From: Octopus sinensis
Lineage: Eukaryota
Length of the DNA stretch: 64,000 bases
NCBI RefSeq assembly: GCF_006345805.1
Contig: NW_021832432.1
Location: 248,001 to 312,000 of the forward strand
Reading direction: 5' to 3'
The notes beneath the pieces are model-generated. The model did not search any database, had not been told where the DNA came from, and saw only the letters and a program-made list of their open reading frames with translations. The position numbers were made by a program, and so were the translations under genes. Shown here piece after piece: positions 2,440-3,765 of the stretch (within the stretch, counting starts at the first letter, position 1; each line of letters opens with the position of its first letter).

Positions 2440-3765
2440 AAGAGCAACAAGGCTAGTTCTAATAGTGGTTTTGGTAGTTCGCTTATAAGTTGTTGTTTAA
2501 TCTCTAGACCATTCTTGATTAAGCAAACCTATAACGAAAGACATTCTAGCTGTGACAATCCCATATTTTACTCAGGTATAATATATGAAGAACCACATTA
2601 TCCAATCTATCCTATTTTTATAAAATATGATCTGGTGTGATTTGAGGAAGACTTGCTGTTATTTCTTACAGGTCAATTGATGGCATAGACATTGTGGTAT
2701 TACAAGTAACAGCTGTAGTGGTTATGTTATTGTAGTTGATCAAAGGCATGCCAGACATGACCACCCAATCTTCTGTTTGGGATAGTGTACCTATCATTAT
2801 CTTTTTTTTTACTTTTTACTTGTTTCAGGACTTATTCTTTGTAAACCTAGTACTTATCCTATCGGTCACTTTTTGCTGAACCACTAAGTTACGGGGACGT
2901 AAACACACCACCAGCATCGGTTGTCAAGCAATGTTGGGGGGATAAACACAGACACAAACATATATACACACACACACACACACACATATATATATATATA
3001 TATATATATATATATATATATATATATATATATATATATATATATATATATATACATATATATATATACAAATATACGACGGGCTTCTTTCAGTTTCCGT
3101 CTACCAAATCCACTCACAAGGTTTTGTTTGGCCTGAGGCTATAGTAGAAGACACTTGCCCAAGGTGCCACGCCGTGGAACTGAACCCGGAACCATATGGT
3201 TGGTACGCAAGTTACTTATCACACAGCCACTCCTGCGCCTATAATCTAATGTACATTTTTTTAGATGTTAGGCTGTGATTTGAGGAAGGTTTAGATGCTA
3301 TTTCTACGAAGTCAAGTGAGCATGTAGAAGATCTCTTGATGGTGTTGTTTGCTATAAGTTGTTGTTTAACTTGCAGCTCAGCCTTGATTGAGCAGACAAA
3401 AGATGGTCACAAGTACTCTGACTATGACCATCCTGTCTTTTACTCAGACATAGTGTGTGCAAAACTCCATTATCTAATGTCTCCATTCTTGTTGGTTTTT
3501 TTTTTATAACATGACATTGTGTAATTTTAGAGATATTTAGCTGCTATGTCTAGCAGGTTGGGTGGTATTGTTAGTTGTGCTCTTTAGCCCTGTTTGAAGA
3601 TATTTATGAACAAAATCGTTTTACTATGACCACTCCTCACCCCTTTTTTTACCGTTTCATGCATCCATCCCTTTTAAGATGTCAGAGTATGACTTAAGGA
3701 AGATTTTGCTACTATTTCTAGCAGATTGAATGACCACCTAGAGAAACTCTCAATCGTTTGGTGAT
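2440..3765 (-). repeat. Four head-to-tail copies of an old ~220-bp repeat (unit 2 interrupted by a SINE)
   Basis: Recurring blocks GTTGTTGTTTA..., GACCATCC and TGATTTGAGG.AGATTT.GCTGCTATTTCTAGCAGG. Dispersed copies near 1775, 15650, 19800, 37783, 38160, 54640, 54790, 57090 and 62014. Confidence 0.75.
2813..3240 (-). mobile_element. SINE family A (3' internal deletion, long (TA)n)
   Basis: Same family as 210-591; head intact (AGGCGCAGGAGTGGCTGTG on the minus strand). Confidence 0.9.

Follow-up and report, generated by a model that had tools for sequence, protein, structure and literature searches.

An ancient octopus repeat family whose reconstructed head resembles a hepatitis delta virus-like ribozyme

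A short repeat forms an array of four units near the beginning of a 64,000-nucleotide stretch of Octopus sinensis DNA (contig NW_021832432.1, positions 248,001–312,000, forward strand; hereafter the window). Does this repeat carry at its head the remains of a self-cleaving ribozyme of the hepatitis delta virus (HDV)-like class, and was it spread by a long interspersed nuclear element (LINE)? The repeat family is real, and it consists of about 15 very old, heavily mutated copies of an element of ~230 bp; all of the family analysis rests on 15 copies within the window. It is best described as a fossil, LINE-dependent, non-coding retroposon family, similar to short interspersed nuclear elements (SINEs) or short internally deleted elements (SIDEs), with some of its units in short arrays. 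The reconstructed ancestor does resemble an HDV-like ribozyme in the structure of its head: three signature motifs are exact, and three structural features are defective. For the whole explanation, in which a fossil LINE-dependent retroposon has a head descended from an HDV-like self-cleaving ribozyme, we estimate a probability of about 0.42.

The family was collected with a profile hidden Markov model (HMM; nhmmer) built from the four units at 2440–3800 (array 1), where the element sense is the minus strand. Minus-strand matches in array 1 were found at 3756–3574, 3579–3345, 3342–3243 together with 2827–2737 (one split unit), and 2702–2474. Elsewhere on the same strand, the matches were at 54980–54784, 54774–54682, 38367–38193, 62231–62037, 57280–57108, 19858–19708, 15692–15588, and 1824–1734, and the plus-strand match among the copies known beforehand was at 37788–37989, with E-values from 1e-49 to 4e-8. 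All of the ~12 diverged copies listed in a preliminary description of this DNA were thus recovered, and their arrangement (four head-to-tail units at 2440–3765, two near 54640–54985, and the rest dispersed) was confirmed by nhmmer and the alignments. A second HMM round extended the family by two copies, 47109–47194(+), which is 5'-truncated, and 49226–49379(+), which is rearranged, and by two tail-only fragments, 13380–13435(+) and 60066–60113(+).

The copies diverge from the majority consensus by 25–47% (Jukes–Cantor 0.31–0.75), and transitions make up about half to two-thirds of the changes. Because the units are only 60–70% identical in pairwise comparison, the arrays were not seen by Tandem Repeats Finder. 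The G+C content of the window is 36%, and microsatellites and short interspersed repeats are abundant. The observed/expected ratio of CpG is 0.28 versus 0.97 for GpC, which is the pattern typical of methylated animal DNA. The damage to every copy pointed out at the outset, including CpG decay, agrees with these figures, and no copy passes the ribozyme descriptor discussed below. All copies in the window are dead. Under the octopus calibration, in which a Jukes–Cantor distance of 0.2 corresponds to about 56 million years (PMC13282606), they would be older than roughly 85 million years. The existence of the family and its old age are direct observations.

The layout of the unit and its common 3' module are likewise observed directly. 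In the element sense, an A/C-rich leader of ~20 nt, often starting with CTTAT, is followed by a head of ~72 nt, the motif AAATTACACC, an A-rich linker, a body of ~130 nt, and the 3' module. The module ends in ..GATCATAGGTCTGCTCAATCAAGGCTGACCTAGGGTTAAAC(AAC)2–3, i.e. TTAAAC(AAC)n, and can also be written as ..CAATCAAGGCTGACCTAGGGTTAAAC(AAC)n. It occurs twice more in the window behind unrelated sequence, at 13380–13435 and 60066–60113 (..CAATCAAG..TTAAACAACAA). The first of these detached modules, on the plus strand, reads ..CAATCAAG..TTAAACAACAAG, and the second, also on the plus strand, reads CATAGGACTAC..GTTAAACAACAAA. Recurrence in unrelated contexts is expected of a tail common to a partner LINE or to other SINE families. 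The detached modules may be 5'-truncated ends belonging either to the partner LINE or to a different SINE family with this tail, and their recurrence fits LINE-dependent mobilization. A different SINE-like repeat at 46850–46990(+) (..GGCCATGCTGGAGCAC..GGATTTAAACAACAAATTGACC..) also has TTAAACAACAA, by chance or through a module in common, and does not belong to the family.

An open reading frame (ORF) survey of the window found no ORF in the family units and no LINE, since no ORF of at least 85 amino acids outside simple repeats had the look of one. ARAGORN detected 0 tRNAs, and neither a tRNA, 5S, 7SL, nor small nuclear RNA (snRNA) head was found for the family with Rfam and ARAGORN; these are the heads, with a Pol III promoter, by which a classical SINE is recognized. 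These results agree with the earlier suggestion of a short non-autonomous element without a tRNA head: the units are non-coding, and their heads match neither a tRNA nor any other Rfam family. A head derived from U4 snRNA was considered (GTAGCCAATGAGG compared with GAGCCAATAAGG) and was rejected (Smith–Waterman p = 0.125). Neither metagenome nor viral contigs contained the core 26-mer. With a looser 24-mer, 77 metagenome loci in microbial contigs were obtained; they were rejected as chance matches with no homology outside the pattern. A bacterial promoter and terminator scan of the window, a method irrelevant to animal DNA, gave nothing.

The head was reconstructed as the MAFFT majority over 13 heads, without reference to any fold, and CpG was restored at three sites, each of which shows a mixture of TG, CA, and TA among the copies. 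With P, J, and L denoting paired, joining, and loop segments, the CpG-restored consensus reads GAGCCA (P1), AT (J1/2), AAGGGAG (P2), CC (P3), TCTACGT (L3), GG (P3'), TCGCTC (P1'), GA (J1/4), C-CTGCTA-GAAA-TAGCAG-C (P4 with its loop), CAAAT (J4/2), and CTCCCTC (P2'). The nested double-pseudoknot order P1–J1/2–P2–P3–L3–P3'–P1'–J1/4–P4–J4/2–P2' and the signature motifs are directly visible in this reconstruction only, and in no extant copy. The order P1–P2–P3–L3–P3'–P1'–P4–C–P2' that had been drawn by eye was reproduced by the MAFFT consensus. The P1 given with it, GAGCGA, turned out to be a minority form, with GAGCCA in the majority; position 5 of P1 is C in 5–6 copies and G in 2–3, as the caution about a variable fifth P1 pair had anticipated.

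The three restored sites differ in their decay. The CpG site of L3 is TG in 3 copies, CA in 4, and TA in 3, and the CG of L3 is accordingly a reconstructed dinucleotide. Positions 2–3 of P1' show a decay mixture in 9 of 11 copies, and the junction of P1' and J1/4 is TG in 4 copies and CA in 6. Because the restoration is based on these mixtures and on the CpG ratio of 0.28, it is independent of the fold.

The consensus was compared with the RNArobo descriptor of HDV-like ribozymes from the Lupták laboratory (supplement of PMC4870747, Figs S11–S14), coded with counted violations and with relaxations that were set after the candidate was known. The descriptor specifies a P1 of the form GNNNNN*:NNNNNY, a P2 of 6–7 bp, a P3 of 3 Watson–Crick pairs, an L3 of TYYHCG*Y, a J1/4 of RN, a P4 of 5–6 bp with a loop of 3–6 nt, and a J4/2 of CNRA* (PMC4870747). 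The consensus conforms in the format of P1, where G1 pairs with C, and in P2 (7 bp), L3 (TCTACGT exactly), J1/4 (GA), P4 (6 bp capped by GAAA), and J4/2 (CAAAT). It departs from the descriptor in P3, at one pair of P1, and at the base of P4. The objective consensus has 3 violations and the first, hand-made version has 2; the plain majority without CpG restoration fails.

How often would such a match arise by chance? Among 20,000 shuffles of the 110-nt consensus, none had ≤4 violations, one had 5, and 14 had 6. The best of 40 first-order Markov nulls of 128 kb with the composition of the window had 4 violations (6 cases), and 40 independent and identically distributed nulls of 128 kb with the composition of the consensus included one with 2 violations and one with 4. 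A match of this quality is therefore expected at a rate of roughly 1e-5 for each consensus examined and roughly 1% for each search the size of the window. In the comparison of descriptor and shuffles, the HDV-like topology of the reconstructed head is beyond chance; it is clearly non-trivial, not overwhelming.

The same figures bear on a competing explanation, to which we give a little under an even chance: the element is an ordinary non-autonomous retroposon or a SINE-derived short satellite, its head was never a ribozyme, and the resemblance is fortuitous. The HDV-like drawing would then be composed of a real P4 hairpin, one purine/pyrimidine complement (P2), and choices made in building the consensus, and the short arrays would have formed via unequal exchange. 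In its favor, 1 of the 80 random 128-kb nulls had ≤3 violations, a window-wide chance match of roughly 1%. Against it, exact L3, J1/4, and J4/2 segments together with P1, P2, and P4 in the nested order were not approached in 20,000 shuffles, and the CpGs of L3, P1', and the P1'/J1/4 junction are each independently backed by the decay patterns.

A series of structural observations weighs against a ribozyme origin. The majority P1 GAGCCA forms 5 of 6 pairs with TCGCTC, with a C·C mismatch at pair 5, and one subgroup also has A·C at pair 6; the minority forms GAGCGA or GAGTGA would give 6 of 6. P3 consists of only 2 Watson–Crick pairs (CC/GG) in place of 3, and a possible third pair is a G·U that overlaps P2 and P1' and costs each of P1 and P2 one pair. 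The base of P4 is a C·C mispair, which is required by the reading of J4/2 as CAAAT, and P1.1 would be U·G plus C·A. These features agree with the reservations expressed at first sight about P3 and P1.1. Of 13 copies, 6 have the catalytic C (4 have T instead), and 11 have the neighboring C. No single copy has ≤5 descriptor violations, and the only matches of that quality in the window are microsatellite noise. The nested part of the fold has a minimum free energy of -17.3 kcal/mol (z = -1.76), which is thermodynamically ordinary, and the minimum-energy structure contains a competing GGUC/GACC hairpin formed from P3', P1', and J1/4. No match to the Rfam HDV, CPEB3, or drz models was obtained at the gathering score or at E ≤ 10 (whole window; 54690–55000; 19780–19900), and at the copies these scans gave no hammerhead, tRNA, or snRNA family, only microsatellite 'miRNA' noise. 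The HDV-type covariance models of Rfam are family-specific. Of the two scoring routes that had been recommended, the descriptor is approached by the consensus (3 violations), and the covariance models are without a match.

Compensatory change was sought in nine complete heads aligned without reference to the structure, and none was detected. Of the cells that should pair, 64.6% do so. Permuting the 3' letters across the copies gives 67.4%, with 495 of 500 such shuffles equal to or above the observed pairing, and the covariation score lies under the shuffle mean. When the partners are slid out of register, pairing falls to 21–52%, which indicates that the register is specific, as a property of the consensus only. 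The preliminary description had named missing covariation as a result that would speak against a ribozyme, and this is formally what was found. The test is without power, however, since neutral decay of dead copies predicts the absence of covariation with or without a ribozyme master.

The pattern of conservation also counts against selection on the whole fold. The best-conserved block of the element is TAGAAATAGCAGCCAAATCTCCCTYAAATTACAC (~40 nt; majority fraction 0.74–0.87), which is composed of the 3' half of the fold and 10 nt past P2'. The 5' half of the fold (P1, P2, P3, L3, and P1') reaches 0.58–0.65 and is conserved no better than the body. Selection on a whole ribozyme would not predict conservation confined to the 3' half plus 10 nt. 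CpG content explains part of the gap, and with transitions collapsed the whole head is at 0.83–0.98. If the head was never a ribozyme, the core TAGAAATAGCAGCCAAATCTCCCTYAAATTACAC would be another functional module, perhaps the central domain of a SINE, a promoter internal to the element, or a site for protein binding that the masters required. That explanation is favored by the contrast between core and 5' half and by the 10 nt past P2', by the missing covariation and Rfam matches, and by the defective P3 and P1, and mollusc SINE superfamilies typically have a conserved central domain that includes a stable hairpin (PMC4758252). Should it be correct, the family would serve as a calibration case, i.e. 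a consensus that meets most of the HDV descriptor (as ~1% of random 128-kb sequences do) without functional support. Taking both sides together, we regard descent of the head from a working HDV-like ribozyme, considered on its own, as a tentative proposal with odds slightly short of even.

A further question is where the copies begin and end. If a ribozyme releases the element RNA, 5' ends are expected at G1, and G1 had been taken as the apparent element start. On balance, this prediction does not hold in the present sample. Of 8 independent 5' flanks, 4 have a CTTAT that begins 16–24 nt upstream of G1 (binomial p about 2e-5, for a motif chosen post hoc), at distances of 16, 18, 20, and 24 nt, and another flank has CTTTAT. 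Most target-site duplications have decayed. In per-copy local alignments, the only usable one belongs to the single copy at 61990–62259(-) (c62235), where TTGTCTT-TTATAGTCT and TTGTCTTCTTTTAGTCT agree at 15 of 17 bases and require one gap (p about 0.05); by this duplication, the copy would begin at -22 and end 38 nt past (AAC)3. Downstream of (AAC)n, CTTAT occurs at the low-coordinate (A) end of array 1, at the junction between its second and third units (C/B), and in the copy at 47109. The exact 10-mer CTACCAAAAC is found in the window only at 2468–2477(-) and 47267–47276(+), in both cases ~20 nt after a family (AAC)n. Conserved sequence before G1 and similar sequence after (AAC)n mean that the insertion ends do not coincide with the cut site, which is a further point against the ribozyme reading; an apparent start ~20 nt before G1 favors a head that was never a ribozyme. 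The pattern suggests that insertions carry the inter-unit linker at both ends, and the formal tests of terminal redundancy are weak: the comparison of own 5' with own 3' ends gave a Fisher p of 0.82, the own-versus-cross permutation of 5' and 3' flanks gave p = 0.15, and the sharing of k-mers between leader and 3' extension across insertions gave p = 0.018 for 5-mers and was not significant for 6- and 7-mers.

Two other explanations concern these ends. The leader may be a target-site duplication produced at a preferred CTTAT-like nick motif, in which case the element would truly run from G1 to (AAC)n. The distance between CTTAT and G1 varies as the length of target-site duplications does (16, 18, 20, and 24 nt), CTTAT or CTTNT lies directly or ≤3 nt after (AAC)n at 6 of 9 3' junctions, the leader of the first unit of array 1 (D) and the extension at its A end match in 16 of 19 columns with 3 gaps, and both detached 3' modules end at (AAC)n. 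The own-versus-cross flank test (p = 0.15) does not support this explanation, the duplication of c62235 lies outside the leader, and the sequences after (AAC)n are alike between independent insertions (CTACCAAAAC), which is unexpected of target-site duplications. We consider it unlikely, although it retains an appreciable share of the probability.

The arrays raise the other explanation, a retrozyme-like element (a 'delta-retrozyme' of cephalopods) in which an HDV-type ribozyme replaces the hammerhead. Multimeric transcripts of tandem masters would be cut at each G1, and the unit RNAs would be circularized, or copied with template jumps by a LINE reverse transcriptase, giving arrays and a leader at both ends. 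The two head-to-tail arrays (4 and 2 units) have units of ~180–240 bp, within the 150–300 bp of animal non-LTR (LTR, long terminal repeat) retrozymes (PMC7761336), and leader-like sequence stands both before G1 and after (AAC)n, with CTACCAAAAC common to 2468–2477(-) and 47267–47276(+) and the 5-mer result of p = 0.018. The terminal redundancy is insecure, however (Fisher p = 0.82; no significance for 6- and 7-mers), the majority of copies stand alone and have a LINE-type tail, and the ribozyme itself is only a candidate. Known animal retrozymes have type I hammerheads and a Penelope-like origin, and Rfam detected no hammerhead in the window. A retrozyme-like origin therefore appears improbable.

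Here, we propose how the favored fossil LINE-dependent retroposon could have worked. In active masters, read-through transcripts, or those of arrays, would have been cleaved by the ribozyme head immediately 5' of GAGC. The cut would have released unit RNAs, which a LINE reverse transcriptase could have copied starting from the 3' module. Past cleavage by the head, its contribution to retrotransposition, and the identity of the LINE partner are steps that we infer.

The individual copies differ in their state of preservation. The four units of array 1 (2440–3800, minus strand) follow one another head to tail; named D, C, B, and A, they descend in coordinates in that order. The D end of the array has a leader, and its A end has an extension beyond (AAC)n. 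Unit D (3566–3774) has the leader CTTTATAACATCACCAAAC at 3756–3774, a head that starts from GATTGA (3755), and a 4-nt deletion in the J1/2–P2 region. Unit C (3345–3579) lacks the head segments from P1 to P1' (the 5' half), or has other sequence in their place, and its P4, J4/2, and P2' are at 3520–3560. Unit B is divided into a head part (3244–3357, identified by nhmmer) and a body part (2735–2823) by a SINE/microsatellite insertion of ~420 bp at 2824–3243. Unit A (2440–2727) has TTAAACAACAAC at 2489–2500, followed by the extension CTTATAAGCGAACTACCAAAAC. The sequence that splits unit B (2824–3243, minus strand) is a copy of an abundant SINE of ~400 bp, interrupted by an (AC)n(AT)n microsatellite, which has at least 15 copies in the window at 65–87% identity (25434–25836, 9161–9562, 7246–7601, 52571–52953, 36944–37316, 8007–8347, 279–592, 56198–56501, and others) and no tRNA by ARAGORN; it probably resembles the major octopus SINE. 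A (TAG)n run at 3805–3829 adjoins the 5' end of array 1, and a degenerate (TGA)n tract (~560 bp, 3978–4541) and a (CTG/TTG)n tract (4822–4917) lie beside it.

Array 2 has two units on the minus strand. The first (54776–55003; c54980) has its head from 54986 to 54922 and the leader CTTATTATACAACATCT at 54987–55003; the second (54620–54775; c54762) is short, with a deletion in the J1/2–P2 region and most of the body missing. A 41-bp tandem repeat at 54031–54366 (8.3 copies, 88% identity, higher-order periods of 79 and 120 bp) lies a few hundred bases from this array. Among the single copies, c62235, with its head from 62235 to 62172 and the flanks TTGTCTTTTATAGTCT and TTGTCTTCTTTTAGTCT, is the best delimited. 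A young 159-bp tandem repeat (62309–62945, 3.9 copies, 95% identity) lies ~50 bp from its 5' end. The plus-strand copy at 37763–37989 (c37783) has its head at 37783–37846 and the leader CTTATCATACAAAGGTGTCT upstream. Three further single copies are on the minus strand: 57108–57284 (c57284; head 57284 to 57221) has P1 and J1/2 of the GAGCCAAT form, 19686–19889 (c19862; head 19873 to 19810) has a near-perfect 3' half and a strongly diverged 5' half, and 1619–1843 (c1836) has P1 and J1/2 of the GAACCAAT form. Two other minus-strand copies have incomplete heads: the head of 38150–38370 (c38370) is cut off inside L3 by a (CA)n/(TA)n microsatellite, and 15500–15713 (c15695) has lost P3, L3, and P1' by an internal deletion. 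On the plus strand, the 5'-truncated copy (47109–47276) consists of body, (AAC)n, and the extension CTTATTTTATCTGATAGCTACCAAAAC, and the rearranged copy (49205–49379) has a head from 49233, a deleted 3' strand of P4, and an exact 29-bp internal duplication at 49266–49322 (CTGCTAGAATGAAATCTCTATCAAATTTA twice).

Other features of the window are separate from the family. A CT-rich tandem array of 1.8 kb at 5157–6957 has a 42-bp unit (~44 copies), a higher-order period of 363 bp (~4.9 copies), and a spurious ORF of 614 amino acids. Shorter tandem repeats are found at 39348–39540 (45-bp unit, 4.3 copies, 97% identity) and 51239–51430 (61-bp unit, 3.1 copies, 85% identity). At 41602–41846(+), the plant MIR2646 precursor model of Rfam matches over its full length but far under threshold (86 bits; gathering score 245), and this stretch probably represents a long inverted repeat or a hairpin like those of miniature inverted-repeat transposable elements. 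The ORF at 60925–61224(+), whose middle part is like a charged coiled-coil segment (..RLEDIRKDVTKYEEQKNTVLKEQTQLEADVETCSRLLKEKDENT..), may be an exon.

Finally, the family can be compared with known systems. In ribozyme-terminated LINEs (R2, R4, RTE, Baggins, and L1Tc), a nested double-pseudoknot head of ~70 nt frees the element RNA from a longer transcript, the role proposed here for the octopus head, and their helix order and L3, J1/4, and J4/2 signatures are matched by the reconstructed consensus. The octopus family differs from them in having no ORF, no partner LINE in the window, a P3 of 2 bp, a mismatched P1, and apparently ~20 nt before the cut site. Ruminski et al. (2011) reportedly listed R2, R4, R6, SART, Baggins, and RTE. 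The presence of HDV-like ribozymes at the 5' ends of non-LTR retrotransposons is established (reviews PMC6765202 and PMC7761336), and non-autonomous derivatives that keep the ribozyme include R2 SIDEs (PMC3414825) and NARTc and other Pr77-bearing elements of trypanosomatids (PMC3383444, PMC4035085). R2 SIDEs and NARTc are the closest functional analogue, as they are short and non-coding and combine a LINE 5' ribozyme module with a LINE 3' recognition end. They are demonstrably internal deletions of, or have both ends in common with, a known LINE; in addition, R2 SIDEs are site-specific, and Pr77 is a promoter as well as a ribozyme.

At the level of motifs, the nearest parallels are sea-urchin drz-Spur and CPEB3-type ribozymes. 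The sea-urchin ribozymes have an L3 of TTCACGT or TCCACGT, a 5-bp P4 capped by GAAA, and a J4/2 of CGAA, CAAA, or CTAA (PMC4870747 supplement). The reconstructed TCTACGT is one base from such an L3, in line with the closeness to known HDV-like L3 sequences pointed out earlier, and the short GAAA-looped P4 and the C-A/G-A-A before P2' are also common to both. In contrast to the octopus consensus, those ribozymes have a 3-bp Watson–Crick P3, an uninterrupted G-rich P1 of 6–7 bp, a G1·U wobble, and proven activity.

Animal non-LTR retrozymes consist of tandem 150–300-bp units with type I hammerheads, are expressed as circular RNAs, and are tied to Penelope-like elements (PMC7761336; bioRxiv 10.64898/2026.07.22.740005). 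The octopus family resembles them in unit size, head-to-tail arrays, and one candidate self-cleaving motif per unit. It differs in the candidate HDV-like class of that motif with no hammerhead by Rfam, in consisting mostly of singletons with a LINE-type tail, and in showing no Penelope-like link. If its head was a ribozyme, the family would be an HDV-type counterpart of the hammerhead retrozymes.

Octopus genomes are reported to contain RTE, Dong-R4, CR1, L1-Tx1, and R2 LINEs and hundreds of unclassified SINE families; the SINEs were either assigned to a tRNA, 5S, or U-type head class or left 'unclassified' (893 families), with ribozymes unmentioned (PMC13282606). Our literature search found no work linking cephalopod or mollusc SINEs to HDV-like ribozymes, and no occurrence of the core sequence strings in literature text. 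The LP-SINEs of molluscs have a ~70-bp head that is common to the start of the 5' untranslated region of Nimb and RTE LINEs from other phyla and whose function is unexplained; their authors compared these heads to the L1Tc promoter/ribozyme (PMC4758252). No ribozyme has been claimed for LP-SINEs, LP-SINEs have not been described in cephalopods, and the comparison made here is by description. Like them, the octopus family has a non-tRNA head of ~70 nt, 3' short tandem repeats after an A/T-rich hexamer (here [A/G]TTAAA), and apparently variable target-site duplications, and the phylum-level setting is likely the same. If the octopus head does descend from a ribozyme, ribozyme-terminated non-autonomous retroelements would extend to cephalopods, and the unexplained ~70-bp LINE-derived heads of the mollusc LP-SINEs would be suggested to be ribozymes as well.

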